Below are positions 1-26,536 of a stretch of DNA of 64,000 bases, in pieces. Positions within the stretch are counted from its first letter, which is position 1; each line of letters starts with the position of its first letter. A program made the position numbers and the translations under genes. Where the stretch lies: positions 806,001 to 870,000 of the forward strand of contig CM060734.1 of the NCBI GenBank assembly GCA_030704615.1, written 5' to 3'. Origin of the DNA: Takakia lepidozioides. Lineage: Eukaryota > Plantae > Bryophyta. The notes beneath the pieces were generated by a model. That model saw only the letters and a list, made by a program, of their open reading frames with translations. It did no database searches and had not been told where the DNA came from.

Positions 1-1232
1 TGGCCAAGCTTTTGCTGAATTGAAGCAGCGGATGGCGGAAGCTCCAGTCTTGAAAATCCCGGAGTTCGATCGTCCGTTCGAGATTCATACGGATGCGTCG
101 GACTTCGCGATTGGGGGTGTACTTATGCAAGATGGACGTCCAGTGGCTTACGAAAGTAAGAAACTAAATGAAGTGGAGCGACAGTGGCCGACGCACGAAA
201 AAGAGATGAAGGCGGTGGTGCATTGCCTTGAGCTTTGGCGCCACTATGTTGGTACCAACCCAATGAAGGTGTTCACGGACAATGTTACGGTGAAGTATTT
301 TGCCACGCAGCCCAAGTTATCCCCAAAACAACTTAGGTGGCAAGATACTTTGGCAGTGTTTGACGTGGATATCGTACAAACCGGGACGTGACAATGTGGT
401 GGCCGATGCTTTAAGTAGAAAGCAGCAGCTCATGTTGGTGTACAGGGGCGAGACGGCGCTCCAAAGGAAGATCCGGAAGGCTTGCCGGAAGGATGAGCTG
501 GCGAAGTCCGTGATGCAGGACTTGAGGAGGGGGGTTAAATCGCAGTTCCACTTGCAAAATGGACTGCTCCGGTATAAGCAAAAGCATCTCTACGTGCCGA
601 AGGGAGGGATCAGAGATAGTCTCTTGAGAGAATGCCATGATAGCCCGCTTGCGGGCCACGGCGGAGCCAAGCGCACTGCGGCACTCTTGAAGAAAGAGTA
701 TTTCTGGCCCAAACTGAGGGAGGAGGCAGAGGAGTATGTCAAGACATGCATTACATGCCAACAAAATCGGAGCGAGTACAAAAATCAAGTGGGGCTATTA
801 CAACCCTTGCCGATTCCAGAGGGGACTTGGGAAAACGTCTCGATGGATTTCATGACTGCTATGCCGCTGTCAAAAGGATTCGATTCAATCATGGTGGTGG
901 TGGATAGGTTCAGTAAAATGGGCCATTTCATCCCCATCAAGGAGACGGCAACGGCACAGGAAACATGACGACTTTACTTCGCTCACGTCTTAAAGCATCA
1001 TGGAGTCCCGAAGGATATTGTCTCGGACCGCGATCCAAAGTTTACGAGTAAATTTTGGAGGGCACTTTGGAAGAAGATGGGGACGAGGCTGAAGATGAGC
1101 ACCGCCTTCCGACCTACGACCGACGGCCAAACGGAAAGAATGAATTCCGTAGTGAAGCAGATCTTGCGGAATTACGTGTCGGCAGACCAAACAGACTGGG
1201 TGGAACACTTAGACACGACAGAGTTCTGTTAT
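1..1232 (+). pseudogene. pol: pol fragment (RNase H plus integrase), frameshift near 373, in-frame TGA at 966-968, truncated
   Basis: ORFs 20-391, 300-968 and 1077-1286: HDSPLAGHGG, CITCQQN, SMDF, VSDRD, TDGQTER. Confidence 0.93.
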
Positions 1233-1594: not shown

Positions 1595-2338
1595 TGTCGC
1601 GGCCCTTTGCCTTGAGGGCAGGGGGTCGGGACACATGAGGGGCTGCCCCTGTGGTGGGGGCAGTGGCAGCAATAGATACGGGGGGCTGAAGCACCTTTGA
1701 GTGCCCAAGGCACTCAAGGAGGCGGAGGTGCTTACTAGGTGGAGCCCCGCACACCGGGATGCGGTGGGGGTGGCTTCACAAAGGGGTGGTGGCTTCATAA
1801 AGGGGTGGTGGTAGCTTAGCGGGACTTAGTGGGGGTGACATAGGACTCACCTTGGGGCGGAGACCTCGTGGTGGGAGTCGTGGGGAGTCTTGGGACTCAT
1901 CACGGTCCATAGGGGCCGTGGTGGATGGGCCAAGACTCACCGCGACTCATCACCGGGAGTCGAGGGTTTTCGTGGTGGTTCGCCATAAATGGCATGGTTG
2001 TTTGTGAAACCCCCGCGGACAGCTATAGAAGTATATATAGGGAGTAGTAACCCCGAGAACGGTGCAAGCCCGTTGGTGACAAAAAACTAGTGAGTAAGCG
2101 AGCGAGCCGGAAGCGACCAAAGAGTGGGGAGCTGTTCCGGACTGCCAACTACCAAAGGGAATTCCCACTGGGCCCAAATCGATGGAGGGTTCTTTGGGAG
2201 ATCAAAGGGGGACCGTTATGCCCCGGTGAGCAGCCGAAGCTCCAAGTTGGCCCGGCGGCCAGGTTGGGAGTTAGGCGCGCGCATCAAAGCGAGTAACTAT
2301 GACTTGAAGGGGAGCTTACCGAAGTGAGGTGCGCGACA
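1595..2338 (+). repeat. 3' LTR of copy C
   Basis: Termini TGTCGCG...CGCGACA form a 7-bp inverted repeat; preceded by PPT; homologous to the LTRs at 22888, 26537 and 32775. Confidence 0.92.
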
Positions 2339-3832
2339 TGGTGAGGGTACTAAGATCAAGTTTGGATGTGGGGGGGTCATGTCTGGGCGAGGATGGGGTA
2401 GGGGGGTCTGTGGGACTGTTTTGTGTGGCTGGAGGGTCGTATCCAGGTATCGGGGTGGTTGCATTGAGTGTGGCGGTAATAATGTCTGTAGAGAGGAATG
2501 AGAATTTGCTAGTGATGTGGTTGTGGTCGTGGTACGATGTGGAGACCGATGCCAGTTGGTCCCCCAGGATATTATGAACAACCCCGGTTTGGGAGTCAAG
2601 TAGTTTGAGGGAAGCATGGATCTCGGCTAAGTAGTGTGGGGGGGCCATGTATTCAATAGAGAGTGGTGGCATCAAGCTTAGTTGGCATAGGAGAGATCGG
2701 ATTTTTGAGATCGAGTGAGAGTTAAAATATCCGTTGCATGTTTCTGGTGGAGGGGAGATGGTTACGACAAGCGAGAAAATGAGTTGTGGGGCGGAGAAAG
2801 TCTTGAGTTTAGATAGGGCTGTAGCAAGTGCTGGGGGGTAGCCCGAAGGTTGTAATATGGTGAGCGGGGGTGTTCTTTGTGTTTTGGCATTTTGGGAGGA
2901 AGGGACTGAAGTGGTCAAGAATATGTCGGTAGCTATGTATAAGAGAGATAGTGTTCAGTTGAAAATATAGGGTATATCTCTCTTGCTCGTCTTCGGATAG
3001 AGTCTTGATAATTTCGGTAATGGTGGGCGGACCGGGGTTAGGGTGAATATCACCACACCTCAGGAGGATTAGGCCTTGGCACGAGTGTACATATGCTTGG
3101 TGAGGGTTAGGGGGGTGATGGTAATAATGTTTAGATTTTGCGGGGAATTTGTAATGTCGGCCGTATGGGCCATGGATGAGGGGATTGATGCATTGGTGCA
3201 CGTGGCGGGTTGTAAGGATGTGGGAGGAGCTGATGAGTGGTAGGGAATTATGGTGGGTAGATTAAGAGAAGGTGGAGCTGGTGGCAGTGCAGTGTGTAGG
3301 AGAAATATATTGGGGGTGGGTTGGTTGGTCGTATTAGGAAACGTTATCATCCACTTTATCTGGTTAGGGAATAGCCTGTGTGGCGGCCCTGTATATAGGG
3401 GCGATATAGCTGTGTTTGTGTAGTGGGTATACATAAGGTGGCGGGGAGGTAGGTGTTGCATATGTGGTGGACTTAGGTGGGATATATTCATCCACGAACT
3501 TTTTATATCCGTTGGTAATGAAATAGATTTAGTGTTTGTATAAGAGGGTATAGTTTGGTAAAGATGATTGGCCAGTAGAGAGATGGGGAGAAGTGGGCCG
3601 TTAGCTTTCCGCGTATACGGAATCTGGGTGACAGACGCAGATGTCATATTATTGGGTTTGAATAAGTTTAGGGGGGTGTTTTTATAAAAGTGGCGGGACA
3701 GGTGTCAAGCGGTGGGTACGGGAGTGACGAGATGGCGGGCGCAGGTAGGCCCTGTACGCGGGCCCCATAGAACGGGTGCGGGGGATGGGGGCTGTCGTCA
3801 GGCAGGGCACAGTGGGTTCTCGAGATGAGGGG
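2339..3832 (-). pseudogene. LINE ORF2 N-terminal region containing the 2A-like motif ILLRCGDIHPNPGP (3028-3069)
   Basis: ORFs 2809-3201 and 2316-2918; ends LDLSTLTM where the other copy reads DLTIISWNV (APE motif I). Confidence 0.8.
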
Positions 3833-4388
3833 TAGGGAATGGAGAAAGAGCCATAAATTGAAAGATTCCAAAGCCCGGGACAATATTCCAAAGCTTGAGA
3901 CAATATTCCATAGCCCAGAACATGCAATGTCTCGGGGTTTTGTTCCTCAAAAAACCACAGGCCTGGGGTATCCTATGGGAATGTAAGGGAACATTTTGTG
4001 GCCAGCAAGTGAGCCTTGGACCCGGGCCTGGGGTATTTCAGGAATCTTTCTAGCCTAGGACAGATTCCTGAAATGATTCTATATCCTAGGCTCGGGCCTA
4101 GGGTCCAGGGCTACCTCATCGTATATACGACTACTATGTATATACATACGAATATAGTATTGTTTCGAGTACGGAGCGGGCTGCTACTGCCAGAACGCGA
4201 AAAGACAGTTTTGTGAAGGTGCGAGCTTGGAGTGCGAGGGAGGAGGAACGCTGGAACCCTGTTGTGTGCTTGCACACAAATCAAGGAATGAGCAAAAGCG
4301 GGATTGTGCCAGACATCATTTTGGAGACGATGCAATCACAGTCTGCATTACCAGGCCGCTTCCCTGTCCTACATCGTCTGGCGCGGAT
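3833..4388 (+). repeat. Left terminal inverted repeat (~556 bp)
   Basis: Reverse complement of 14740-15275 with a few indels; the ORF track shows mirrored translations at 4016-4216 and 14893-15090. Confidence 0.95.
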
Positions 4389-5860
4389 GGCTATGGCCGC
4401 TTGAGAATGCCGAGCAGTGGAAGCCCGTTTCATGGAGGGCGTCGACCTTTTGTCACCGTGACAGCGGTCTTTGGAGGAAGCAAACCAAAAGTTTCAGTTC
4501 CTGACATCTGAATGAGTACACATATTTCTATTTCTCTTGTATGCTCTCATTTTGGATCTGTATCAATGTAGGCTGAATTTTCTACCCGAATGGGTTTTTC
4601 TATGAAAAATCAAGCTTCAGGACAGATAGTATGCAGCAGGGACTTGTCCTCATTGGCCCACATTGAAGGTTAGAGACGTATGGCTGAAAGGGGTGCCGGT
4701 GAGTTGAGGTCTCTGCTGTGGGGCAGAATCTGTTTTGCTGGGTCATCTTAACTCCCTGGACATTTTGGGCATGGTATTTTGAGACGTTGCCCAACGACAG
4801 CTTGAACTAAATCAACGCTCAATCCCCTTCAATCAAAGTGTTTCGCTGAGTGAGGAGGAGCAGCATGTCCTGTGACTAGGGTACACAATTTAAGGGCCCC
4901 CTTTCAGGAAAAGGTGCGAAGTATGTTAAGTTTCAAGTATTGCCTTGTCCTGTTGCTATTTTCAGGTCCCTTAAGCAAGCTCTTTTGCTGACAGGGATTG
5001 CATTTTCTTCTCTGCAGGTGATAGATCAGATGATGGCCAATGCCATTCATGTCTATGCACACAACACTCAGGCACCAAGAATCCTACTATTTTCGCATGC
5101 TATTCAAAAATCTTTTCCCCAAGTCAGTGCCAGTTTGTTGTTATGTTTTTTCACGGACTTCTTTGCATCACATGTCAGTCACAGTTGTTCTTGATTACCT
5201 GGGAATCAACCCCTAGCATTTGTTCTAGGTGACTGTCTGCCAATGGTGCTGCATGGATATCTAAATTTACAACACCGGGGTTTTCCAGCCTTGTGCGAAT
5301 AAGTCTGTCTTATACATAAAAAATTGGACAGGTGTGGACCTGGACAGTTTCTTACATCGGGGTGAAGATTATGGTTTGCAGATGTAAACCAGTCACCCAC
5401 TATTTCCTGGTCGTAACGCTGAATTAAAATAGTGGATTCAGGGTGAGTGGGTATAGATGGAGACACACCCTATGGCACCCAGTTATGGCACCCTAAAGTA
5501 CGCAATAGTTGGCCAATTTTTTCTCTTTTTGGTCCTTTCTGGCTGTACTTTTCTTTTATCTTTGTACATATGTGGGCACTGTCTAACACAGTAGAATGTG
5601 TGTGGCAGCAATCAGCGCGGTTGACAGTGCCAGGAGGGCCAAGTGTGGCGTGCAGTACAGCTGTGGCCATAGCCTGGGATGAGGCATGGTCCAAAAACTT
5701 GGATCCTGGGCAGCTGCAGGTGTGCATGTGGCAGCCTACAGGGATGCGGCTCCTGTGGGAGTTGCAAACAACACCCCTGATGAGATTATAGAAGAAACCA
5801 GAATGCCTCCCCCTCTCTCTTCTGTGGCTTCTGTGTCTTCTGTGGTTCGACATCTGGTAG

Positions 5861-6128
5861 ACGAGATGTGGTCTCATGGAGTGCCATGATTGCAGGATAT
5901 GCTCTGCATGGATGTGGTAGGGAAGCTTTTGATATGTGCAATACAATTATACAGGAAGGGTCATGCCCAATAAGGTCACATTCATCTGCATTCTCAGTGC
6001 TTGTGCCAGCCTGGGAGCCCTGGAAAAGGGCAAAGAGATCCATGCTGACATCATCAAGGCTGGAATGTCATGCTGGAAACTGCCCTCACTGTCATGTATG
6101 CCAAATGTGGGAGGGTAAAGGATGCACG
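5861..6128 (+). pseudogene. PLS-class pentatricopeptide repeat gene fragment (about 2.5 motifs, frameshifted)
   Basis: RDVVSWSAMIAGYALHGCGREAF / MPNKVTFICILSACASLGALEKGKEIHADIIKAG / MYAKCG. Confidence 0.9.
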
Positions 6129-7327
6129 CCCTTAGTGGAAAGTTCAACACTTGGGGTTCCGTTGAGTTGTCATGCTGATGACAAGTTACTTTACTGGAAG
6201 AGGAGGTTTCTCTAAAAGGCCCCGAGTTTTAAACTGTAGTTTTGCAGCTTGAACTTGGGAACTGCATTGATAGGATATTGACTAAATACTCAAAGAAGCT
6301 TCAATTGAGCGGCACCTATGGCTTGAATTGAAATGAAGTTTGTTGGTGAGCTCGTTATGAATGATATGTGATGCCTGCTGCAACGCACATCAAAACTACA
6401 GTTGAACCAGCAACTAACTGCTGTGAGGGGAAGCATCAGGACCACTCAGTGGCAAGCAGAACAAGTGCACTAAATTGCTGTAACTGCATACATCGAAGCA
6501 TTCCAGCAGAGATGCAGTGAAGGAGACCAAGCCATCCATACAGTAAACAAGTCCACGAGTCTTTGTGATTTCCTAATTTTGCAACAGCTGTTTTTGTTTG
6601 TGCAGCAGTGATGTAGCTATTCGACTGGTTGTTACCCTCACAAATCCTTGATGGTGTCTTGTATTTAATGTTTTACCCCGTCATACATAACTATCACATA
6701 CTGAACGTTAGAAGCCTAAACCACAGTTAAGGCTGTTCAGTGGGCACATGGCTGGACATCAAAGCAAAGGAGGCTTGCACCCCCATCACTCAGGGAAGCC
6801 AGGCCACTTGCTGAAATTACCACAAGAGAAGCTGAACAATCAACTAGTCACCCCAATCAACCCTTTAACGATGGAGATGATGGTGAGATACCACAGCACA
6901 AATTTCGCAGCACAATACTTGAAACCGTTCTCAGTCTGCTAACTCCAAATTCATGTTGTAATTTCAGACATACATCTGTTGCTGCAGTTCTTCCCTTCCA
7001 ACTTCCACAGACAGAAAAAATGGTCGCACAACAACAGTAACTCCACAGATCAAAAGTCAAAAGTCAAAAGTCTCAAAAACAAGTATTTAATCAAGAGAGG
7101 GGAGAAAACAGCGTATCACTATCAACCTCTGATTCCAGGGTGCCTGTTTGTTTCAAATCGGGGTCGAGGAACTGGCACCTTGCTCCATCTCCACAAGCAG
7201 CCGGAGAGCCTCATGACTTAAATCAGAATCATCGATCAAATCCAACTGATCCACAGAAACTGCCTGCTGAGATGCCATGTCACAATATCGTGAGAGAAAA
7301 TAATGAAGCTTGTAGCACTCAACACTA

Positions 7328-9546
7328 TCAGGTTGCTCTCCTCCCAACCTCGTAAGCTCTGTCTCGTAGGTCAGCAAAGGCTGGAGTAAGCTCAACTCTT
7401 CTAGCCTGAGGGATGGGTACTGCGCCTCTGGCTCTAATTGCCCGCCACTGTTGATTACCATGTGGGCCCAAATCTTGGGTGCCGATGGTGTTGGGATCTT
7501 CCTCCACATGGGGATCCTCAAGAAGGTGGTCCCTCCATCTGCACAAAAGATGGAATTCTCTTCAATAAAGCCACAAGAAACAATGCCACTTTAATCACTT
7601 TCACAAATGTATGATTTCCATCAAATTCTTACAACCAAAAATTGAACCTTGCATACCCAGGAAGACGTTCGTATTGCCTGAAGTAGCGTGCAGGCACATG
7701 TGAGGCACGGTATCGGCCATTCTTGTTGATCTTGCGCACTCTGTGGAGATTCCACACCTCCACGTACTCATCAACAGCCGCTTGAAGGATTGGAACAAAG
7801 ACTGCAACAAAAGATGCACTCTGCCAATCATCGTCCACATCCAGGAGGCCTTCATTGGCCATAACCTGGAAAGAATTCTTGTAGAAGAACACCACACGCT
7901 CCCATAGTTGGCGCCACCAGTGCTCGATCCTCTACAACCACAAAATCATTATTTGAAGGGTTTTACACACAACTCAACAATGGTTGGGAGGCAGGAACAT
8001 CTCCTAACGTCCAGCCCTAGGGCCCTGAGCTGATAATCTCTTCAAGTAGAAACCCTATAGCTTCTGTAGAGATCCCCACGTCACAAGACAGTGCCTACCA
8101 TTACGCAGTCAGATACCAGATGTCTCCAAACACTGATGTAGGCTTGCTGAGGCCCCAATGAGGCATAGGCTCACCACAGATTGACATGTTCGGATGTTCA
8201 CAGAAGACTGGTGGCAAATAGCAGCCCAAGCTGATCTGGGCTGTTCTTGACTTAACTGTGACTATGAAGACAATGGGGTCTACAACAACAAACTGAACAA
8301 TCCATTGAGCGGAAAACATGCATAATCGTAGCCTAGGAATTAGGCACCCATGTAGGGCAGCCTGCAATTCAAGAGATATCAAACTATGAAATTCTAAGCT
8401 GGACAAATATGAGACCCCTTCCTTTGCTTCTCTCTTTCCTTTTCCAGAAGGGTGCCCATAATTTAATCCGCACACCAAGAACTTGGCAGGTCCCTACAGT
8501 GTAGTAAAACTCTCACTTGCTTTTGATTACTTGCACAGGTGCACAGATCACTGGTGTGGCCATATAAATACATTGTGCAGAAATCAGATACTACTGGCAC
8601 CAAATCCCTTATGCAACCCATATTATAGTCCAAAAAAATACCAGTCAAGGAATGAGAAAGCAAATCCAAAAACAGATAAGAAACTAGGCATGGCTTCAGA
8701 AGGTCTCAAACTTGGTTTTTTGTAGAGGATCCCGTTGCGAACGGGTTGCGAACATCTGTCCGCACAGTTTCCAGGTGTTCTCTGATGAGGCTGTGTTCTG
8801 AATCAAAATCAGAGCGAATCCGCAAAGGTGGCCCGTATTTCGTTACTGCATCCATGTAGCCTACAAAAATGGTCTATGCCCTTTTGTTGTCGGCTACCTT
8901 TGCCCACAACACAAAGTGGGAGGCCCCGTCTATCCCTGCATGTACCCGGATGTTCCCAAACATCGTGAGCTTGTCGTAAGCTGCAGGGACAAACACAAAC
9001 ATGTGCATTTAGTATTACAGTTGAGGTTGATGTGTGGGTTTGGAAACCTCATTACTATACTGATTGCATGGTTTACTCTTTAACTATTGATCCCTTCTTT
9101 CTCTCTCAACACAAACAAGGGACTGAACTTACAATCGATGTGCCACAATGCCATTGGCTTTGTCACATTGTACTGGCCTCTCTGATGAGAGATTGTGCTC
9201 TACGCCTCCGATCATAATGGTACCCAGATATGATCCTCAACGCACAAGCAACTTTCCTTTGAGAAACCCTGATGTCCCTCCTTGCTAGGGCAACCTTGAC
9301 CTGCATAATGCCCCAATTCACCCCATTCTCTTCTGTTGGAACCACCTCTTCAATTTTTCTGCAGAGCTCTTCGAGAGTAAACTCATGATAGGCTTTGAAA
9401 GGGACACCAATAATTTTGGACATTACTCTCTTTAACTGTCTAACATCCTCAAGACCTAGCGCACTTGCAATAGCCTTGAGAGATTCCCCTTCTCGAAGCA
9501 TGGTTCGCATAAAAACTTCCGTATCATCTACAGCAGGCCGCTCCAT
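7328..9546 (-). pseudogene. Intron-containing DDE transposase with integrase-like core (IS3/IS481-related, IS3EU-type); frameshifts near 9175 and 8880
   Basis: Spliced exons ~9546-9133, 8980-8712, 7931-~7653 and ~7538 onward read PMALWHID/SYDKL..VHAGIDGASHFVLW..PLRIRSD..TGSSTKNQ/RIEHWWRQL..WNLHRVR; GT-AG junctions restore the motifs. Confidence 0.88.
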
Positions 9547-10725
9547 GTTTAGGGACACCAATCATCAAGCCAAGTTTGTAAGACCCAAAGCAAAGCAAAG
9601 CAAGCAACATTGTTTAAGCAAAGCAAGGTTGTTTAAGGGTACATCACTAAACGGGTGGTTAGTGACAGAAGGGACAAATCATCCATAATGCTAATGGCTG
9701 CTTTATGAGATACACCGAGTTCTTCTTCCTCAGAGCTCATCCATTCCTCGTCTTCAACAGGAGGCCAGAGTTCTCACTATACCTGAATTCTCCAAACAGA
9801 TCCTATTGTCCAAGGTCTGAACAAGGGTGTGGACTGCAAGAATTGGAGTTGGTAAGGGTAGACAGTACCCTTTATCCTTGAGATGAGTTATCCATACTGG
9901 CTTTTCTTTGTTGTTCTGAGATTCACAAGCACTTTGTCAGTTTACGTATGAATTAATTAGTCATCCTCAAACCAGAGGTAAAGAAAGATTTTGGAAATTG
10001 TAGTCACATTCTGTTTAGTCTTAGTGATCTTGTCACATTAATGCTGTGAAACATCATATATGTGTATCTCTGGTGTTTCCTTAGCCACTGTCGAAAATCA
10101 AAAGCTCATTTCATGGTTTCAACTGCATATCTTGTGTATGTCTTGTTCTCTTTCAGAAACCATGTTGGAAACTTTCATTAAGTGCCTTATGTAGAGTGAT
10201 CACAGCATTTTGGTATAAGCAGAGATACAAGAGTAATTCTTTTGCATAGTCAAACCCTGAATCATGTGACATACAGGTAATCTGTTGGTGTGCCATTTTC
10301 AAGGTAAGTGAGCACATCATATCCCTTTTCTTATCATTATCTTTCCAGGGAATATCCCTATAACTTGTGGCTATTTCACAGTTTCTCAAGACAAGGTGTG
10401 AGAATCCATTTCAATTCCAGATCTCTTAGTGAATCCAAATTAGGCCTATAAAGAATGCCAGAAAAAACCTAACAGTGAAGTATCAAAAGTATCACAAGTA
10501 TCCCTGTCAAGTCATCTGAGTATTCTCCTAAAGGCCAGAGTGGAGGGATCTGAAATTCCTCTCCTAAACGCCAGCCCCTAGCACACCGCTCCTTGTGTTT
10601 GCACTTGTACTCTAATAGCCTTGACTGAACAGGATGGGGATGCTTGTAGCAGGGTCAAACAAACCTCGGGATTCCAGCAAACATACGGAGGCTCATAACA
10701 AGTGTAAGCCCCATCCACACTGAAG

Positions 10726-11859
10726 ATGGCCACTGAGGAGAGTCATGATGAGGTCGTGGGTGGAGCTGGCGGAGCTCCAACCCCTGCACCTGTTCCCCGT
10801 CCCCGAGTGGCTGTATTTCCTACTCCACAGTCTAGAGCACCTGTCTTTCCTCAACAAAATCAGGCCCAAGGGCAAGAATTTTCCTTCCCCCGCAGGTTTG
10901 GATCTTCTAGAGCAGGCTCTTCCTCTAGGCACCTACAGACTCCCAGCCCCAAGCAAGTAACAAGGAGGATATACTTATGGCCACAGTCCACCCAATGGAC
11001 CCATGTCAATGGCATCCCGGTGCCTACTGTTGCTGCCTGGCCATCTGATTTGCCTTCTATTTTGGTGACTCTTTCAACTTCCACTGTCTGGGGAGGGTTT
11101 ATCCACCCAGAGCCCTTCTCTCCACAAAGTGCAGAGTTTCACATTGCCAGGCTTTTCACGACTCCTGCAACTTCAGGCCTTTTTGTCAAGAGGGCAAAGA
11201 GGTCCCGAGGTTCGGGTACTAATAAAAGCTTTCTCTTGGAGCCCTACCGCCGCGAGGCAGGGAAGTTTTGGGGTTCGTTGCCATCACAAGCCTTCGTAGT
11301 CTACTGCCCAGACCCCCGCATAATGCCAAGTGAGGGTATTCAGGCCTACATAGACAGCCTCCGATGCCCTATCAGAGATCCTCGATCTGCACTTGGTTTA
11401 GAGGATGCATTGGAACAGGGGCAGCCCTCTACCCGGCTCCCTCGTGCAAGTACTACAGTTGCAACTCCACGCGGTTCATCCGGTCTTCGAGTAGCAAGAC
11501 CAGCTCAATCTCCTATACCTGAAGCCACAACCAGTTCTTCAGATAGTGACTTTGAGGAACTTCTCCGAGGCCAACCTCGTCAACAGAGAGATGAGCAAGC
11601 TAACGATGCTAATCCAAATCCCAGATTGCCATCCTTCACTGTAGGCTATACAACAACAAGTACGACAAGTACTTTTCCAGCTCCAAGTACAGCGTTGGCA
11701 GACAGGGCGCCATCATTCAGCAAACCAGCAGGCACATCTTCTTTCCTGTGGCCAACTCAATCACGTCGACATACCTCTCAAGCATCTTCATCATCAACCA
11801 ATGCACTAGGGGAGGTCAATGCTCACCTTGAAGGTTTATCCACTCATCTTCTGCTCTAG
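10726..11859 (+). CDS. Uncharacterised 377-aa ORF, divergent from the transposase; probable second gene of the TIR element (may be only the first exon)
   Basis: Long uninterrupted ATG-initiated ORF with P/S-rich flanks and a hydrophobic central segment; no domain recognised. Confidence 0.55.
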   Translation: MATEESHDEVVGGAGGAPTPAPVPRPRVAVFPTPQSRAPVFPQQNQAQGQEFSFPRRFGSSRAGSSSRHLQTPSPKQVTRRIYLWPQSTQWTHVNGIPVPTVAAWPSDLPSILVTLSTSTVWGGFIHPEPFSPQSAEFHIARLFTTPATSGLFVKRAKRSRGSGTNKSFLLEPYRREAGKFWGSLPSQAFVVYCPDPRIMPSEGIQAYIDSLRCPIRDPRSALGLEDALEQGQPSTRLPRASTTVATPRGSSGLRVARPAQSPIPEATTSSSDSDFEELLRGQPRQQRDEQANDANPNPRLPSFTVGYTTTSTTSTFPAPSTALADRAPSFSKPAGTSSFLWPTQSRRHTSQASSSSTNALGEVNAHLEGLSTHLLL

Positions 11860-13419
11860 ACTATTCAGCAGTTCAAATTATCTCGTAATCATCTCCGTCG
11901 TGTAACAGTCCACTCCTACGTGGTCTAGACTGCCCTGGGCTGGCATCCTCTTTTTTTTCATCTGGCAGACTGGAAATCAAATGGTCTATGGTCCATAGGT
12001 AAGAAAGTTACCTCGCCATTGTCAAAGAGGGCCACCATGTGGATGCAGCTCTCATCAATAAGGGAGGAGGGCTCTGCACATGTATCGAGCAGTGCCCACA
12101 ATGCACAGAAGGCTGAAGCCAATCCAACCTGCCTGCAAACACAAATTCGTCACGAGCGCCAAGTACTACCCTTAAACTTTACATGGAGGGAAGACTACTG
12201 TGGGCAAGCCTTTCTGCAAAATCACTTTTTGGAGGGTTAGTTGTTTGTTCTCATTTCAGGTCAGCAGCCACTCCGATTGATTTCATGCCAGTGTTGCCAA
12301 ACAGTAAATTCCCTTGTCACAGGCATATCCTACTCAAAAAATGGTCTTGCAGGCCTAGCCACAGATTCACATTGATTGGATCGAGCATTCACACTTGACA
12401 ATTACAAAAGATGGAGAGAAAGGTACATGGAAATCAATTGAGTAGCCAAACGCACAAGTCTGCCCCCAAACAATGTGACTTAGACTCTGTTTGCAGGGAC
12501 CTCGTGGCCACAGACAAGCATCCAGGTGATGAGGGACAGAAAACAGCGAGTAGGGGGAGAAACAGAGATCAAAGGGGGGCCACTACCAAGTGATAGACAC
12601 TTTGACAGCATATAAGTGATTGAAAACATTATTGTGTGATTGAAACCCTCATGAGAGTTTGTCTATGTGGAGGACAAATTTCTATGGTGCCATCAAACCT
12701 GCTCAATACATGACCTCAGAAGTGAGGTACCTGGATTCACTGAAAATGGGTTCTCCAAAGTAACCCAGAAGACCTCATTTCAACCCAGTGTATAGAGTGT
12801 GCAGCCAACATACCTTTGGTGTACATACATCCCACAAGCAAGGAATGTACTAGGTCCAAATTACTTATCTCAGCACAGAAGAGTAGTATTGAATGCACAG
12901 ACACATACCAAACAAGCTCACATCAGGATTTTGCCAGACAGTACCTGCTACCATTGCTCACACCGGAGGTCAATCCAATGGTACAGCTCTGCACGGTGCT
13001 GGTACAGAAAACAACACTGGAAGTCGTAATCCCACTCTGTATCCCCATTTACACTATCCTGGCATTTCATCAAAGTCCTGTTTGGCTTAAGAAATGCAGC
13101 GCATGGACAGCCTGATACCTGTATGATCATTCCATTGTTCAGCATCAGCCGTATGCACATAAATAATCATATGTTCCTTCCCAGAAATGTGAAATGTGAA
13201 ATGGAAAATGTCAGATGTGATCTCCTAACTTACATGCCTAGTGCCGCTAAAGTATAAAAAAAGTTTTATGTCTCCACCCACAAAACCTAGGGTTGAATTC
13301 ACATTATAAGCTGGAGCTAGACCTAAACCACAACCATTTCTGAACACCATCTAATAGACTTTTCAACTTGAGACCTGATTGATCTTCCCTCATCTCATGA
13401 CAGTGAAATTGGACCTGAC

Positions 13420-14443
13420 CTTCTTTTCAAGCAGCTGGACATGATGCTTGGCAGCCTTCGATGAAGCACGCTCTGACAAGAGCCTGGCTCGTAAAAAGTC
13501 GATGGTCATGGTGGATGAGTCTTCCCCCAATGAAGGCTTCCTACACAAGATACCCGAGTACCAGCCCAAGTTCTGAGTTTGGTTTGAAACATAGTCGAAC
13601 TGCCCGGTCAAAGGCAAATGGGGACACACGCTTTTATGGAAGACTTCGCTCATTGCATCATTCAACAGGGATCTTGAAAAAACTGAGAAGCTGGGAACAG
13701 CTCAGGATGACCACTTCCTTCTACTCTGCACCATGATTATGAGTTGTCTTTGTTCACCTATGATGGAGGATGTTGAAAAACACAAAGCAGGTTGCATCTC
13801 GGAGTTTTGGTCATTAATTGTTGTAAATTTTATTGTGACAACATAATGTTAAGTTCTTTTTCATATTATGGATTGCATCTTTGCTGGCCCTTCTATGCAA
13901 AGGCACCTAATGGGTTCAAACTCTGCACCCAGCAAACACAAGCGTATTGACAATTAGCTGCCATGGTGCCTGGAGTTTCATTGAATAAGAGTTTAGTCCC
14001 TGCTAAGTTTGCATGGCACGTGTGTGTGCTGGAGATTCTACGGAGTTTTAGCATCGAGCTGTCTATGTACAATCAAAGGGCTTCTGAGAGATGTATCCTT
14101 AATCTTACCTCTCCAGAGAAGGAAACTCCATATCACTGCTGGGTTCAGTGCCCTGCTGCCCCTTTGCCAGTGAAGATTCATCTGATGATTTGGTCTGACA
14201 GTCCACACCTTGGCCAGTGCTTGGCTCCATACACCGTTGCTGCTCTCTTACATTCTCATCTAGCCCATGGGTTGTCACTTCTTCAGAACCAGAGAGCTCT
14301 TCGCTATCGCGGATAATTTCACCTGGCACTCTTTGATTGGAGCCCTTCCCTGCATCTTCTTCTCGCTTGGAAGGTTTCCATTTCAATGTGTCAGGGATAT
14401 TAAAGGAGTTACATTTCCGGGTGTGGCAGAGGGACTGCTGCAA
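13420..14443 (-). pseudogene. Exons of a conserved land-plant coiled-coil protein gene (MTIxFLRARLL motif), apparently captured and 3'-truncated
   Basis: EDSSTMTIDFLRARLLSERASSKAAKHHVQLLEKK followed by GT; upstream exon ends GAGAG/GTAAG near 14108; I recognise the motif from uncharacterised plant proteins. Confidence 0.7.
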
Positions 14444-14739
14444 CCTGGATCCCTCTCAAGCTCGCTGGATGTACTTGACCTTCTGCAAACAGGAAAGCCC
14501 GCCAAATGAGCAATCATAGAACTCAAAAAACGTCTGATTGAGAGTATCTGTAGGTTTATGGTGAGGTCATAGTGACTCCACTACCTTTGCCAAGAATAGG
14601 TTCAATCTAAAGCACAAATCTTTTGCACATCCACAAACCAGATCATATTACAATAGATGTGGTGACAACTCCCAAATTGGAGCTTTTGTCAATCTGCTGA
14701 CTTGAGAGCTCTTTGGTCAGTCCTCACCGGGTTCAATCA

Positions 14740-15275
14740 ATCCGCGCCAGACGATGTAGGACAGGGAAGCGGTCTGCATCGTCTCCAAAATGATGTCTGG
14801 CACAATCCCGCTTTTGCTCATTCCCTGATCTGTGTGCTTCTACCGTCAGGGGTTCCAACGTTCCTCCTCCCTCGCACTCCAAGCTCGCACCTTCACAAAA
14901 CTGTCTTTTCGCGCAGTACTCGAAACAATACTATATTCGTATGTATATGTATAGTAGTCGTATATACGATTAGGTTGCCCTGGACCCTAGGCCCGAGCCT
15001 AGGATATAGAATCATTTCAGGAATCTTTCCTAGGCTAGAAAGATTCCTGAAATACCCCAGGCCCGGGTCCAAGGCACACTTGCTGGCCACAAAATGTTCC
15101 CTTACGTTCCCATAGGATACCCCAGGCCTGTGGTTTTTTGAGGAACAAAACCCCGAGACATTGCATGTCCTGGGCTATGGAATATTGTCTCAGGCCTTGG
15201 AATATTGTCCCGGATTTGGAATCTTTAGCCCGGGCTTTAGAATCTTTCAATGTATGGCTCTTTTTCCATTCCCTA
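14740..15275 (-). repeat. Right terminal inverted repeat (~536 bp)
   Basis: Inverted copy of 3833-4388. Confidence 0.95.
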
Positions 15276-15650
15276 GAGGGGGGAGGGGAGTGTGAGGTGC
15301 ACCAGCCGGCGGAGCACGGCGAGTGTTGACAGTGAGCGGTGCTGTGGGTGCGGCGGCCGTGTATAGAGAGTTTGGGTGTTAGTTGGGGCGTTGCGGAGTC
15401 AGTATAGTAATTTGAGTGTGGGAGTTGAGTGCATAGAGATGTAGTGGGACTCACTAGGTAGCATAGACATAAGGGAACAAGTTCATTGTGTGCGCATTGC
15501 GTTGAGAAGCAGGGGAGAACAAAATGGCCGCAGCCAACATAGAAGAGAAGGATCGTGTATAGAGCTAGCCAAGAGATAGAGTAGTAATGCTGGTGGCCGA
15601 GTACGATTGTTCGTTGAGTGGCCCTTCTGCTTGTGGGTTGCTTGTGCTGT

Positions 15651-17800
15651 TTACGCATTCGGGTGCTTGGCTATCATGGTATTGGAGTCACCTTTCGTAG
15701 TGTCTGTGGCGTGCTGGGACTCGGGGGGCCCCTGCCTCCCAGGCACGGGTGCAGGCTGAGTGCAAAGGAGGCCTGCAGTGCCCAGCTTATGAGGGCCCTC
15801 ATGCTGCAGCGCAAGAAGGGCCATTGGCCGGAATCCCGCGTTTTGGCTGGCTGGTGGGTTGCTGGAGCCGCCTTGCCCCGTGGAACTGGTGACCTTGCTG
15901 GGTGGGAGTGGGAGCTTGTCTAACACCATGTTCGCATGATTGTAGAAGTTGGCCAAATTGGCCCCCAGATTCTTTGTGATAGAGTCTTGTAGAGAGACTA
16001 GATAGGAGTGATTCTCCTTTTGTTGCGCTGCCATGGTGACGGCCACCCTGGATTCCATAGCAGCCAACTCGCCTCTAATGTCGGTTTTGATGGTGATGGC
16101 ATGTTCTGCAAACTTTCTGTCTATTTCTAGCATCATGGTATCATGACCTTTGCGGGGATCCGGGTCCGTTTTAATGATGATAGAGTTGACGGTATCTGCC
16201 AGGGCTTGATTTATATTGGCGACTCGGAGGCGCTCCAGAATTTCGTTGGCAGGGGGTGCTGAGCCATTCAGGCTATTCGTGTGTGGCTCGAATTTCACCA
16301 GCCTGCCTATCACCTGTATCGGGGGCTTGTTACACCACTGCGTGAATATGCTGGGATTCGTGTAGGTGATGAGTGCCATGCCTGAGTGTTTGGTTTTCTC
16401 CATTGGGGTGATTTTACTGAAGTAGACTTGAATGATGTTATCTTTGCCGAAGGCATCCCTGAGAGCAGCTTCTGTAACCTCCAGCTGGGAGTGTAACGGG
16501 TCCAAGCTTTTTACAACAAGTGTAAGTGCATCCCTCTCTACCACTATCTCTTGGGGGTGGCGGCAAGACCTGTCGTGCTGCCTCGGCGGGTACGCAGCTG
16601 CGGCCTGATGAGGGTGTGGTCGATGCGGACTCCCATTTCCAGCATGCGTTTTTTTGTATCCACGGCAGCTAAGTAGATAAAACAGAATTTTTTGTCAGGG
16701 CCTGGCTTGTACACGTTCATGATTTTGAATTCGTCACCGTGGTAGTACGTTTCCATGATGAAGTGCATTGTGAGCTTGTAACTGATGGTGCCCAGCAGTG
16801 TCTCACTGTTCAATTAAAAAGAGAGGTAGTCCGGGGATGCCAGCAGGTTAAAGGCCTTTTCAATTTTACCTTACAGCTTGATCCCGGAAGCCATCACCAT
16901 AACAAAGGCCCTGTTGCCCTTGAGCAGTGCAATCCCGTCAGTGGCCGGGTTCAGCAGCTCGACTTTGAGTAACCCTGACCATAGTTTGCTTGAATGTTTG
17001 GTGTATGCCGTGATTGGGGAGTACAAAACATTCTCCAAGGGGATGTCTGTGAACCTTTCCTTTGCACGGTATAGAGCCTGCTCCTTGGGCATGTCTGTAT
17101 CCTTGTCAAATCGTATGATTATGTGATGTGGTGTTGCAAACAGGCCCGATTCGGGGTCGACGTTCGCGCCCTTTGGAAGCTGGGTGAGTGGGTACAGCTG
17201 CCCATCTTTCCCATCTGGTCTAGTGGCAGGGAAATATAATTGTGGTACGTGGGGAAAAGCTTTCAAGCAGTACCTGAGTTCATGGATTTCGGAGGCCTTT
17301 AGCCCGAGCTGTCGGAGCTCCGCGGTGGATCGCATCTCCTTGATTATGGGCAGTTCCGTGTCCAGCGCATGTTGCTGGAGGACCTGATAGCCCATCCACA
17401 GTTGCGGCGGAGGCTGGGAGTTAGTGCCTTCGAGAATTGGCGGATGTTCGTTTGAGGGGGGGCCCCTGGATTTCTTGGGTTTGGAGTGTGAGCTGCCTTC
17501 GTCACTGTTGACGGTGCTGGAAAGTTGCTTGAGGTTGGGGCTGGTATGAACCGCCCTTGCTGGCATGCTGGATACTGTAGGCGGAGGGGCTCCTCGTTGG
17601 GGAGAGAAATCGGCCTTGGATGATCGCATTTCCTGGAGCGAGTTGACCTCTTCGTTGGTGATCTCTATCGGGTCTCGGGCGGACTTGGGTTGTAGTACTT
17701 GGTCGTCAGCAAAGTATTGCTCATCGGAGACGTGCATGTCACTGACCTCTTTGTCTTCAATTGGGCTCAACTGAGCAGAGCCTTCGTCTTCGTTGCTCAT
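15651..17800 (-). pseudogene. LINE ORF1 (RRM-like nucleic-acid-binding protein), two frameshifts
   Basis: ORFs 16871-17935, 16544-16813 and 15651-16544 are homologous to 52735-53980 (PATDGxALL, ERDxLTLVVK, ERLRVANI). Confidence 0.8.
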
Positions 17801-20352
17801 CTTGGCCGTATCCTGTTTCACTAGAGTGTAGAGGTTGAGGGTGTGCAGCCTATGGGGTGCTAAACCTGTTGAGCAGGGGTGTCTACTGTTGACACGAACT
17901 TGGGTCAGGGTGCTACTTGGTTTAGAGTGATACAAGCATGGAGGTATGTTGTGGTGGAGCAGTGGGGCTAGGAGGGGAGAGGCGTGAGAGCTAGTGGGAA
18001 GGAGGAGTGTGCTTAGTGGGTGGGTAAGTGCGGTACTGGCCTTTTTGTATGGAATTCGCTTTGTGGTGGCGGCGAGACAGTGTGGGTTGCCAACAAGCTG
18101 CAGCGGAGATTGGGCATTGCAGTTACTGCATTGGCCAGCTTGGGTGGTCTCGTGCTTTGTGTATGCAAGTAATTTGGTGGGGCAAAGACGGCTGATGCGC
18201 TAATGTTGCAGTGGGTTGGGTCTGGCGTGAATTAATCCAGTCGCATGGTGTAGTGAGGTCATTGGCAGGGGCATTGAGGTGGGGGGGCAGCATTCGTGTG
18301 TGGGAAGTTGAATGTATGGCTGTCACAGAGACTGATCGTAGTGAAGGGGGGTTATGGCAGTTATTGGGGGGACCAAGTCTGGGTATATTTGTTATGAAGG
18401 TGAGGGCTGTATAGAGTAGATCTTGAGTGTTGTGGGTGCCATATGGCTGCCATTGTGTGCAGGGGTGTAATGTGAAGATGAAGGTGTCATCATGAGTTTG
18501 GTTATTTTTGGATGAGAGGTGTTGTTGGAGCAAGTGAGTAACATAATTGAGATGGTTAGGGTATAAGGTGTGTAGTAGGGGTTGTCTGGTTTGGGTGTGA
18601 TCATTGGGGGTAGAGTTATACACATCTTGGGTAGGGAATGGATGTATCCAAGTAAATGGTGATATGGTGTTTGATATTTGTGGTTAGTCGGTTGATGAAT
18701 TGGATGTATGTATTGCAGGGATGCTGGAGGTCCCTCAGTGAGGTGTAGCTTAGGCAGGAGGGAGCACATCAGTTTGACGCATAAGTTTTGTGAGGGGTAG
18801 TGGTATTTGGGGGGGTCTCTGGTGAATTTGTGTAGGAGGTCTGTGAGGTGGGGGCATATGTTGATAAGGGTGATCTGGGTGGGTGTGGTATTGGACATAT
18901 TATGGAGGGGTGGCCAGAGGCGGGCTTGATGGGGTGGTCTGGTAAGTATTTGCGTTTGATTGATGTGTTTGTGATAGTCCTGGCTGGGACATTTTAAAGT
19001 GTGCACATTGAGAGCTATAAACGGGGGTGTGCCCTTCGGGCAATGGTTAACATGAATACTGTAGTAGCTTGGCGAGTCAAAGCTTTAAATATTTTGGACG
19101 TGGAGCCTGAGTAGCAGTGCAGGCCCATCTTGGGATATAGACAACTTTGTGAATACTTCATTATCAGAGAAAATGATTGAGAGAAGGATGCCATCACAGG
19201 GAAGTGTGGCATAGTGAATCATGTTTCCAGAGTGAAGGTATGTTGCTGGCAGAAGATAATTGAAGAGGGCATGTTTGGGACTTGGAAAGCAGGTCAGCCA
19301 GCACCACAAAAAGCAGTGTGGGTGGATTGACAGTGGCCTGATGATTTGATTGAAAAGAGAACCTGAAATGGAGGTCCCACGAGGTGGGATAATTCTGCCT
19401 TGGCATGCAAAGTGAACTTGAATTGGGACGGAGGTTCCTTTGGTGTGTCCACTGTGGGCTCTCACATCTGGCTCCTGCCAGATCTAGGGTTGTTAGCTGG
19501 CCACAGGGGGCATGAATATCTCTGCCATGTAGTGATTTGAGCTGAGCTCCAGGTGAGCTCGTTTGGGGATAGTGAGAACGAGTAGTCACTGTAGGGTAAA
19601 AACACAAAAAGAGGTTAGATGCAAGTTCATGAGTGCAACAGGAGTGTAGAAGGACATTGTAAATCAGGAAACATGCTGGTGCATATAACTGTAAAAGCAA
19701 TGAAAGGGGTGGGGAGTATAGAGGGCTTGCACCTTTTTTTCATGCGGGATGTCAGATCTGTGTTGGTGGCTGGTGTGACAATTGAGACAGTTTCCTTGTC
19801 AACATTTAACCAATGGAGTGGAGGGGGAGGTAGGGACTGGGAAATCTTGTTTAGAATTGTGGAGATGTAGTCTCTGACCTGATGTGTGGACATGATATAT
19901 ATATAAGGCCCAGGGGGTGTCCCATGAGGGGTACCTGATGAGCTGGGCCCTTATGCTGGCATGAGTGTGTTTGCAGATCTGCCTGCAGCTACATACGGAG
20001 TTCTCGTCATGCCAGAGTGAGTGGGTTGGCTGATACAGATGGGTGGACGAAATGAGCAGCAGGGTGCAACAGTGGAGGGTAGAGGGATACGACATAACCA
20101 GACATACACAGGTCATGCCTAACATAGAGTTAAGTGAGTGGTGTGGTTGAAATCTGCAGGCATCTTGGTGTATGGGAAGAGAGAGAGAGAATTGGGGGTA
20201 GGATCTTAGGGGTAGATGATATGAAGGGGGGACATGGATTTTTCCAGAGATAGTGGATGGCGGCGTAGTGGATGTAGGGAGGGTATCCCAAGAACATCTC
20301 TCAGAGATAGTGAGATATGAGGCAATATACAGGGAGGGAAGGGTGAGTGGGG

Positions 20353-21734: not shown

Positions 21735-22480
21735 CTGAAGACCAACATATATCTCTAGTATTCATTGTGTAATTTTGAACATCTTTCCAATGTAGCCTAA
21801 AATGTCATTGACATTGTCTAATCTTTGACTGCAAATCAGACCATCATCAACAAATATCGCCAAAATGAGCTTGGGTTCTTTGTGCTATTATACACACAAG
21901 GATCGGCTGGGCTTGGAATTAAGCCATAGGTCTGAACAAAGCTGTTGAATTTTCGATTCCATGCCCTGGAAGCTTGCCGCAACCCGTACAACGATTTCTT
22001 GAGTCGGCAGACATTTGTAGGTTGACTGGATCAACAAAACCACGCGCGCTCCATATAAATTTCCTCGGTGATTTCTCCATAGAGGAACGCAGTCTTCACA
22101 TCAAATTGCGTGATATCTAAATCCAACACTGTCGCAACTGATAATATTGTGCAAATGGAATCAAATTTTGCAACAGGCGAAAAGGTTTCGGTGTAGTCAA
22201 CACTAGCACGCTGGGTGTAACCTCTAGCGCACATACGTGCTTTGAAGCGCTCAATGCCTCCATCGACGTTAAGCTTAAGCTTATACACCCATTTGCATGT
22301 GATTTTCTTTCTCCCAGGTGGCAGAGGCTCGAGCTGCCACATCCCATTCTCCAAGAGTGACCGATACTCCACCACCATAGCTTTTTTGCACTCGTCGCTT
22401 TCGCTACAGTTTAGCATTGCGTCATAGTTGTCTGGCTCCTCGAACACGTGGCCATCATAGTTGGCGATACATGCATGATG
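21735..22480 (-). pseudogene. Ty1/Copia reverse transcriptase fragment
   Basis: ITCKWVYKLK, RFKARMCARGYTQ, DYTETFSPVAK, QFDVKTAFLYGEITEEIYM; downstream LYGLRQASRAW and AIFVDDGL in another frame. Confidence 0.93.
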
Positions 22481-22887
22481 CCGACCAGGGAGCGACGCTA
22501 CGGCGTGAGCGGTGAGCGCACGCTCACGTGGGGCTGACGTGGCATGAGCACAAGCTGACGCACTGTGACGTGGCATGAGCCCACACTCATGCCACGTCAG
22601 CGTGAGCGGATGTCGTGTTAGCCCGAGCGGAGGCCACGTCAACAAATGCTAGAGGACGGGCGGTCGAAGAAAGGGTACCTATTCCCGTTAGACCTATATC
22701 CGTGGGAATAGGCATGTACAATATGATGAAATTAGACCCCATTATGTAAGAAGACCCCATGGCTTCAATGAATAGGTAGGATTGTAAACCGTCGACCTAT
22801 GCTGCATATTGCATACAAGACGACAAAGAATCCACCATCTTCAAAAGCATTCAATACATAGCAGAAATGATGTGCTTTGAAGCACAC

Positions 22888-24220: not shown

Positions 24221-26002
24221 CTAAAGAAGGCGCAAGTTTCTTTGCCCCTTTGGATGGAAGTCACCCTGTGTAATCACATGCCCCAGGAACTCCACTTTTG
24301 TGACCCCGAATTCGCACTTTGAAGCTTTGGCATACAGCTTCCCTTCCCGCAATTTCTGGAACATCCTTTTGAGGTGCTCCAGGTGCTCCTCCTTTGTTTT
24401 CGAATACACCAAGATGTCGTCGATGTACACAATCACAAAGTCATCCAACCACTCCTGGAAAAGGCTGTTCATCAGCGTGCTAAAGGTCACGGGAGCGTTG
24501 GTGAGTCCAAAAGGCATCACCAAGAACTCATATGAACCATACTTTGTCCTGCACGCGGTCTTCTCCTCATCTCCTTTCGCCACTCGAATTTGATAATAGC
24601 CGGAGCGCAGATCGATCCGGCTGAAATACTTCGCTCCTGCCAACCGATCGAAAAGGTCGTCGATCCTTGGCAAAGGGTACCGGTTTTTTATAGTCACCTT
24701 ATTCAAAGCCCTGTAATCGACACACATCCGCAGCGTCCCATCCTTCTTGTCTGCGAATAGCACCGGGGCTCTGTAAGGTGACTTACTCGGCCGGATGTAC
24801 CCCTTTGACATTAGATCTTTGAGCTGAGTCTTTAGCTCGATCAACTCTCTGTGGCTCAACCGGTAGGGCGCCTTGGCAGGCGATTCCGATCCCGGTACCA
24901 TGTGCCCAGGCTCCCTGCAATTGAAACACACTCCATCAAAGGTCGCCTTCTGTCCGCCATAAGCCGCTCCACCCACTTTTCCTTTCGAAGCACCGGGTGC
25001 CGCCTTGACTTGTGAAGGCCCTCCCTTCGATTTCCACGTGCCATTGTCGCCGCGTGGCCTATCCCACTTCTTTTCCGGTCGGAAGGAGTCACCTTCCCGC
25101 CGGGTCTTCTTGTGGTTCAGCTCCGTACGGCCTTGTCTTTCACCCTTAGGGACATCCGAGAAACATTCAGCCCTCTCAATTGCCTCGTTCAAAGTCTTAG
25201 GTGGCTTCTCCTCCAACTTCCGCCTGGCCCATGGGGCCAGTCCCGCCACAAAGTTGAAGACCATTTCTGGTTTTGCCATGTCCGCGACTTCGAGCAACAG
25301 CACATTGAAAGCCTGGACATATCCCCAAATGTCATCTGTTTGCTTCAAATTCCTCATCTTGTCCCGGGCGAGCCAGGACGCGTTGAGGGGCACAAATTGC
25401 CTCTTCATCAATTCTTTGAACCCACTCCAGTTCAAGGTTTCCAGGCTTGGACCTCGGTCGTGAAGGCGTTTCTGCCACCATTGTTGAGCATAGCCCCTCA
25501 AATAGGTGGGAGCCACTTCCACCCGATCCTCGTCACTCAACTTGGCTGCCCGGAAGTATTGCTCCAGCTCCAAGAGCCAGGTATTGAGTGCCTTCCGATT
25601 TCGGACGCCCTCGAAGGTGTCGGATTCCTTCGGCTTCACCTTAAACTTTGCCTTAGTGGAAGTGGTATTAGCCGCCTTCAACACGTCTTTCAACGTCCCG
25701 CCAAATTGCGCCAACAACCATTCCCATAAGGCTGCCGGCATGGGAGGCATCTGTTGGTCGGTAGGAGCTCTCAAGGATTCCTCAGGCTCCGACTCCTCAG
25801 ATTCCTCTCGCTCTTGAGCGGCCTCGTTTTCGAAAACACGCATTGCTTCCTCAAACGGCCGCCTCGGTGACACGTCGCCCCCATCGGGCTCACCAGGATC
25901 ATCATCTTTTGGGCCGTTCCGCTTTCGTTTTGGCTTGCCCGACCCCATGATGAGGCCAATCCCAAGGACGATCGCGTACTGAACTCTAAGCTCTGATACC
26001 AA
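24221..26002 (-). CDS. Gag fused in frame to RT; protease, RNase H and integrase deleted
   Basis: 593-aa ORF: gag, broken zinc knuckle [10 protein letters not shown] joined to [11 protein letters not shown] motifs MPFGLTNAP and YIDD. Confidence 0.88.
25990..26001 (-). promoter_or_regulatory. Primer binding site for initiator tRNA-Met (copy A)
   Basis: TGGTATCAGAGC two bases from the LTR end. Confidence 0.95.
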
Positions 26003-26536
26003 GTATCGCGCACCTCACTTCGGTAAGCTCCTCCCTCAAGTCATAGTTACTCGCTTGATGCGCGCGCCTAACCAATTTGGAGCTTCGGCTGCTCACCAGG
26101 ACATAACGGTCCCCCCCTTGATCTCCTAAAGAACCCTCCAACGATTTAGAACCAGTGGAATTCCCTTTGGTAGTTGGCAGTCCGGAACAGCTCCCCAGTC
26201 TTTGCTCGCTTTCTGGCTCGCTCGCTTACTCACTAGCTTTTGGTCACCAACGGGCTTGCACCGTTCTCGGGGTTACTACTCCCTATATATACTTCTGTAG
26301 CTGTCCGCGAGGGTTTCACAAACAACCATGCCATTTTATGGCGAACCACCACGAACACCCTCGACTCTCGGTGATGAGTCGTGGTGAGTCTTGGCCCACT
26401 CACCACGGCCCCTATGGACCGTGATGAGTCCCAAGACTCCCCACGACTCCCACCACGAGGTCTCCGCCCCAGGGTGAGTCCTATGCCACCCCCACTAAGT
26501 CTCGCTAAGCTACCACCACCCCTTGTGGAGCCACCC

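Follow-up and report, generated by a model that had tools for sequence, protein, structure and literature searches.

A structurally complete, coding-dead transposon, very probably of the IS3EU/GingerRoot superfamily, in the genome of the bryophyte Takakia lepidozioides

The stretch of the Takakia lepidozioides genome considered here (64,000 nucleotides; assembly GCA_030704615.1, contig CM060734.1, positions 806,001 to 870,000 of the forward strand; "the window" refers to the whole of it) harbors what is very probably a structurally complete, coding-dead GingerRoot/IS3EU class II (cut-and-paste) DNA transposon of a bryophyte genome. It is a single element of 11,443 base pairs (bp) occupying window positions 3833 to 15275, whose ends, target-site duplication (TSD), four-exon transposase gene, family assignment and three inactivating lesions were all observed directly. 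Such an element had been proposed earlier by a model that saw only the letters of the window and a list of their translated open reading frames (ORFs), and this proposal is referred to below as the original prediction.

The tips of the element read TAGGG...CCCTA, i.e., it has TA..TA termini, and they are flanked by two copies of GAGGGG, a TSD that must be exactly 6 bp long because the bases adjoining the two copies differ. The features that define the borders are the following:

3827 to 3832, no strand: left TSD copy, GAGGGG, identical to 15276 to 15281
3833 to 4388, plus strand: left terminal inverted repeat (TIR), 556 nucleotides (nt), opening with the left end of the element, TAGGGAATGG, from 3833
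3865 to 3916, plus strand: 20-bp subterminal unit, repeated 2.6 times in tandem within the left TIR (Tandem Repeats Finder and TIR alignment)
14740 to 15275, minus strand: right TIR, 536 nt, closing the element with CCATTCCCTA at 15275
15276 to 15281, no strand: right TSD copy, GAGGGG, identical to 3827 to 3832

A global alignment of the left and right TIRs gives 95.5% identity where bases are aligned and contains four indels, each 6 to 20 nt long; beyond the TIRs, the similarity falls to random (25/100 matches). The 20-bp unit is mirrored at the right end, each TIR thus holding two to three tandem copies of it near the tip, and these subterminal repeats are putative transposase-binding sites. 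No further copy of the TIR was found elsewhere in the window, the tip pattern had 0 matches among metagenome contigs, and a protein-based scan of such contigs returned a single distant one of 2.9 kilobases (kb), which was of no use.

Encoded on the minus strand, the transposase gene is split into four exons rather than forming one ORF, and the exon model was derived from splice sites read directly and from a comparison with related loci:

9133 to 9546, minus strand: exon 1, with the ATG at 9546, a weak helix-turn-helix (HTH) region and then WHID (the first catalytic D)
9132 to 8981, minus strand: intron 1, GTAAGT..CAG, phase 1
8712 to 8980, minus strand: exon 2, KL..IDGAS..RSD..STKNQ, with the second catalytic D
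8711 to 7932, minus strand: intron 2, 780 nt, at the NQ|RIE junction
7657 to 7931, minus strand: exon 3, starting with RIEHWW (the catalytic E)
7656 to 7539, minus strand: intron 3, between exons 3 and 4
7153 to 7538, minus strand: exon 4, the C-terminal region, with the stop codon at 7155 to 7153

All of the introns are canonical (GT..AG), and the joins restore WHID-S-YDKL across intron 1 and STKNQ-RIEHWW across intron 2. When the exons were searched singly against Pfam, they matched PF24764 (rva_4, "integrase core domain") collinearly, the WHID piece of exon 1 covering profile positions 2–16, the RSD piece of exon 2 positions 50–103 (E 5.5e-6) and exon 3 positions 104–172 (E 2.8e-13), with two of these matches exceeding the curated cut-off. 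As the matches end at 103 and resume at 104, the NQ|RIE junction falls between adjacent profile positions. The original prediction had, therefore, been right about the TAGGG...CCCTA termini, the 6-bp GAGGGG duplication and the TIRs of about 550 bp, as well as about a spliced gene whose junctions rebuild WHID, RSD and STKNQRIE.

In the remaining domain searches, the N-terminal exon yielded only weak HTH matches in Pfam and no zinc-finger match, exon 3 additionally matched rve_2 weakly, the exon searches recovered no hAT, MULE, CACTA, PIF or mariner domain, and no other transposase domain was found by Pfam anywhere in the element. Compared by sequence with solved structures, the transposase gave only marginal integrase and TnsB matches, retroviral integrase cores among them. 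Were the gene intact, its length of about 446 codons would lie inside the span of the full-length relatives (430–530).

An exhaustive representative search recovered 112 relatives of exon 3 (a word search with this exon had no matches), the closest named of which, from the moss Ceratodon purpureus, bear the label "integrase core domain-containing" (60% identity to exon 3) and are followed by proteins of the liverwort Calypogeia fissa and then by mollusc and fungal ones. Full-length members of this family match rva_4 strongly and rve only weakly, below the threshold, and the pieces of the window transposase align with them in order. All of the pieces, including the two C-terminal ones, are also collinear with three related loci, namely, L001 (on a eukaryotic contig of an ENA assembly) and L003 and L004 (both on Ceratodon purpureus chromosome V, at about 89.4–89.5 megabases). 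Conservation between the element and these loci is confined to the transposase region, and none of the three shows DNA similarity to the TIRs of the element or convincing ends of its own. L003 and L004 are themselves copies of a segment of about 8 kb, 99% identical, about 80 kb apart and differing by a 1-kb insertion, with an rva_4 transposase gene inside.

The intron following WHID is common to the window gene, L001 and Ceratodon, whereas the one at NQ|RIE, 780 nt long in the window, measures about 110 nt in Ceratodon and is absent in L001, which demonstrates intron gain or loss at this position among close relatives; an extra intron is seen in both L001 and Ceratodon within the region equivalent to window exon 1. 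The exon-3 region was also placed in a rapid maximum-likelihood tree of 126 rows and as few as 90 columns, with Shimodaira–Hasegawa-like approximate likelihood ratio test (SH-aLRT) supports and no bootstrap. In it, the window sequence falls within a 26-row clade together with the Ceratodon proteins (SH-aLRT 96), which is nested in a 60-row clade also holding Calypogeia (98), both clades being apart from the animal and fungal rows (Patella, Aspergillus, Letrouitia and Elaphomyces).

These relatives also make it possible to recognize the gene as dead, since it carries two frameshifts and one in-frame stop. The first frame change is located inside an AGAGAG run of exon 1 (9183–9178) and is a mutation, because no such change is seen in L001 and Ceratodon, whose corresponding stretch is open in one frame; an in-frame TAG interrupts exon 2 (8876–8874) at a position occupied by ordinary residues in the closest relative; and the second frameshift can be placed in exon 4, at about 7351–7325, because two window frames there match one continuous frame in L003/L004 and L001. 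Inactivation by frameshifts had been foreseen in the original prediction and is corroborated by relatives reading through both sites, the TAG being an additional lesion. Because the HTH part of exon 1 overlaps the DDE part in a frame offset by one, much as in bacterial IS3, a programmed -1 frameshift of the IS3 type was considered for that site; it was rejected, given that two relatives are single-framed there, that the change falls within an AGAGAG run and that no slippery heptamer is present.

As for the placement of the element among the integrase-type transposons, complete IS3EU families are bounded by TA..TA termini, their TSDs usually being 6 bp long, and the GingerRoot elements of Selaginella lepidophylla group with IS3EU at 99% bootstrap, i.e., the two are one lineage (Kojima 2023, PMC10045372), which lacks an HHCC zinc finger before the core and has an HTH-like N-terminal region instead (PMC10045372). 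GingerRoot elements have been described as having GC-rich TSDs of 6 bp, mostly TA..TA tips, TIRs of 100–150 bp and sizes of 3.9–12.9 kb, as often carrying host gene fragments and sitting in gene-poor, Gypsy-rich DNA, and as being limited, among plants, to lycophytes and bryophytes (Cerbin et al. 2019, PMC6839031). The window motifs YNVT.KPMALWHIDSYDKL, IDGAS, RSD and NQRIEHWW agree with the IS3EU/GingerRoot rows of the published core alignment (Figure S1 of PMC10045372), the closest row being Selaginella lepidophylla SL_GR-020, and do not fit its Ginger, IS481EU, Polinton, retroviral, IS3 or IS481 rows.

The element combines an rva_4-type DDE core and these motifs with a 6-bp TSD (seen in one copy), TA...TA TIRs and an HTH region unaccompanied by HHCC; because every defining feature examined is present, it is a member of IS3EU/GingerRoot. 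In Ginger1 and Ginger2 (TDD), the integrase is of the rve type and contains HHCC and GPY/F modules, and the TSDs measure about 4–5 bp. Here, there was no rve, HHCC or GPY/F match, the TSD is 6 bp and the motifs are different. The TSD of 6 bp likewise does not fit IS481EU, which has TSDs of about 4, 15 or 25 bp (PMC10045372), and the motif block is that of the IS3EU/GingerRoot rows. Assignment to the IS3EU superfamily by the original prediction is thereby upheld through both the PF24764 matches and the motif agreement, and so, in view of the exon searches, is its statement that the element is unlike hAT, MULE, CACTA, PIF or mariner. Its notion of a "little-described plant lineage" has to be corrected, however, given that this lineage is GingerRoot, published in 2019 (PMC6839031) and merged with IS3EU in 2023 (PMC10045372).

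Apart from the transposase, the element contains the following:

5784 to 6212, plus strand: degenerate fragment of a PLS-type pentatricopeptide repeat (PPR) gene, in which the frame changes (Pfam PPR, E 3.6e-5 and 4.8e-5, the second repeat being in another frame)
10726 to 11859, plus strand: 377-codon ORF rich in S, P and T, with no Pfam match and no homologue
11961 to 12178, minus strand: probable fragment of an M18 aspartyl aminopeptidase gene, about 65 codons, with a frame change (Pfam Peptidase_M18, E 5.6e-4, below the cut-off)

The PPR fragment, positioned between the left TIR and the transposase, is read as captured host sequence, and so is the M18 piece, a probable assignment for which the Atlas feature search returned M18 clusters only (best score 0.87). 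In the related loci, nothing matches the 377-codon ORF, and its recognition in the Atlas is low. A conserved second protein-coding gene beside the transposase was not found, only the transposase being shared with the relatives; the open stretches tested against Pfam at 9.6–14.7 kb held no domain other than the sub-threshold M18 fragment, and no HECT or other accessory domain was detected in open stretches of at least 55 codons at 11.9–14.7 kb or in the longest stretches elsewhere, although shorter decayed exons could escape such a search. The two genes that the original prediction had named as typical of the superfamily are, thus, not both recognizable in the window copy. A second gene is a usual and not a defining trait of IS3EU, and it may have been lost from this copy.

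The sequence that received the element seems to be a repeat of its own, parts of which can be followed on both sides of the insertion:

2316 to 3832, minus strand: left flank, continuation of a repeat resembling a long interspersed nuclear element (LINE), collinear with 54.6–55.0 kb of the window, a part lying ahead of the endonuclease in the paralog
15282 to 17935, minus strand: right flank, ORF1-like part of the LINE-like repeat, matching 52.9–54.0 kb collinearly in tblastx and at 66% nt identity over 1,064 nt

More precisely, 16957–15900 of the right flank matches 52936–53979 and 2696–2361 of the left flank matches 54645–54952 (minus strand versus a plus-strand paralog), after which the paralog continues into two halves of an APE-type endonuclease (Exo_endo_phos). 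Since both flanks are collinear with a paralog leading into such an endonuclease, the host sequence is a LINE-like repeat, and the insertion point lies between its ORF1-like part and its endonuclease; a strong G-over-C skew is common to both flanks and is interrupted by the element. The original prediction had argued that a host LINE frame rejoins once the element is removed, and a 179-codon open frame does indeed span the junction on the minus strand after the element and one TSD copy are taken out, but this is weak evidence and proves little, because the strand is C-rich and poor in stop-forming bases. The part of the claim that stands is the LINE-like host, backed by the paralog; no LINE Pfam domain was found in the immediate flanks. 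At 52.9–55.0 kb, the spacer of the paralog is too diverged to show an uninterrupted target site. The paralog as a whole (50290–56364, plus strand) comprises very long, P/T/H/S-rich open frames of 552 and 193 codons, with no Pfam match, followed by the endonuclease halves.

The LINE-like host repeat also contains a 2A-like motif, LLRCGDIHPNPGP, at 3028–3075 on the minus strand (NPGP at 3039–3028, within the ORF 3201–2809), located between the ORF1-like part and the region that, in the paralog, leads up to the endonuclease. With H in place of the E of the canonical D(V/I)ExNPGP, the motif contains the sole NPGP of the window and was not seen in the paralog.

Other readings of the same data have to be weighed against a GingerRoot/IS3EU transposon. 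One could argue that the long inverted repeats belong to another superfamily (hAT, MULE, CACTA, PIF or a foldback element) and that the GingerRoot-type transposase is a nested or captured passenger, as but one copy was seen, in which ends and transposase are linked just by co-location, and the element does contain foreign gene fragments; the scenario is nevertheless very improbable. TSDs are 8 bp for hAT, 9–10 bp for MULE, 3 bp for CACTA and TWA for PIF, none of which fits the duplication observed, whereas 6 bp together with TA..TA tips is the published IS3EU/GingerRoot signature, no other transposase domain is present in the element, and no inner TIR pair or TSD was found around the transposase gene. 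Slightly less probable still is an origin from another integrase-type superfamily (Ginger1, Ginger2/TDD, IS481EU or Polinton) or from the integrase of a rearranged long terminal repeat (LTR) retrotransposon. The RNase-H-like integrase fold is common to all of these, and the weak rve matches of family members and the marginal matches to retroviral integrase cores might be taken to suggest it, but the Pfam match is to rva_4 and not to rve, the N-terminal exon is weakly HTH with no zinc-finger match upstream of the core, the motifs and the TSD length side with IS3EU/GingerRoot as described above, the repeats are inverted and not direct, and there is no reverse transcriptase, polymerase or capsid gene in the element.

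Domesticated transposases do exist in plants, and a host gene of integrase origin lying between chance inverted duplications, with no mobile element involved, might therefore be imagined; it is the least credible of the readings considered and can practically be dismissed, seeing that the gene has two frameshifts and a stop, that the repeats stop exactly where a perfect 6-bp duplication begins and that the flanks join as one LINE-like repeat. What does weigh against the GingerRoot/IS3EU assignment is, for one, that the link between the transposase and the ends, the copy number of the family and the TSD length all rest on one copy, and, for another, that the TIRs of 536–556 nt are far longer than the published 100–150 bp. 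Furthermore, the third base of the tip is G, whereas rust IS3EU has TAYGG, and the rows of the tree are database relatives, with no Repbase IS3EU, Ginger, IS3 or IS481 references included.

Judging by what is generally known of DDE transposases and of the IS3EU/GingerRoot superfamily, the enzyme of such a transposon would consist of an N-terminal HTH region and an RNase-H-like DDE core; it would bind the TIRs, probably at the 20-bp subterminal repeats, cut the element out at its TA tips and join it into a 6-bp staggered target cut, the repair of which would have produced the GAGGGG duplication. The window copy would itself be unable to make transposase and presumably be mobile only with transposase provided by an intact relative that recognizes its ends. 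Acquisition at the DNA level, as described for Selaginella GingerRoot, may well account for the PPR and M18 pieces.

The element, then, is a newly found, inactive member of a superfamily that is already in the literature and has already been reported from this host group; it is distinguished solely by unusually long TIRs and by having no recognizable accessory gene. The novelty is small: the TIRs are about four times the published 100–150 bp and longer than the published values found for the superfamily, so that TIRs in IS3EU/GingerRoot are now seen to reach about 550 nt. It nonetheless provides a well-resolved bryophyte example of GingerRoot/IS3EU, with exact ends, a TSD, four exons and mapped lesions, which matters little beyond annotation, and adds a case of gene-fragment carriage by GingerRoot outside Selaginella; no new question is opened by the window copy alone. 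That the window copy represents a separate bryophyte GingerRoot lineage, characterized by half-kb TIRs, 20-bp subterminal repeats, the lack of a HECT or other accessory gene and the carriage of host fragments ("Pack"-type GingerRoot), is a tentative idea that is somewhat more likely to be wrong than right.

The rest of the window holds several other repeats. Chromovirus-type Ty3/Gypsy sequence (24221–32719, minus strand) encodes gag, protease, reverse transcriptase and an integrase with SH3 and chromodomain, and its ORFs 24221–26002 and 31319–32719 have the same gag N-terminus, which suggests tandem or nested Gypsy copies. A Gypsy RNase H–integrase fragment is found at the very start of the window (20–968, plus strand) and a Copia-type reverse-transcriptase fragment at 22031–22645 on the minus strand (RVT_2, E 3.8e-25). 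There is, moreover, a 278-codon ORF (39607–40443, plus strand) with an OTU-like cysteine-protease match just under the cut-off (Pfam E 3.1e-4), situated within a markedly AT-rich segment (GC 0.27–0.36 at 39–42 kb). Rfam gave no match in the window.

When set beside the known systems, the element shares with bacterial IS3 and IS481 an N-terminal HTH region followed by an integrase-type DDE core, but differs from them in that its gene is eukaryotic and spliced and its frame change is a mutation; IS3, moreover, has TG..CA tips and TSDs of 3–5 bp, unlike the window element. With the IS3EU elements of Repbase, it shares the 6-bp TSD, the TA..TA termini and the catalytic motifs, WHIDSYDKL being identical in IS3EU-1_CGi of the Pacific oyster, although the IS3EU elements described so far are credited with two proteins, whereas no second gene is recognizable here. 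Fungal IS3EU elements carry TET/JBP and alpha-kinase genes and end in TAYGG..CCRTA, the window copy ending in TAGGG..CCCTA. The likeness is closest to GingerRoot of Selaginella lepidophylla: a GC-rich 6-bp TSD, TA..TA tips, TIRs, a size within 3.9–12.9 kb, near-identical core motifs (..PM.LWH.DSYDKL.. and NQRIEHW), carried host gene fragments, repeat-rich surroundings and a non-seed land plant host are common to both, a resemblance drawn from protein motifs and descriptions, while the TIRs (536–556 nt here versus 100–150 nt there) and the host lineage set the two apart, the nearest relatives of the window transposase coming from a moss and a liverwort.

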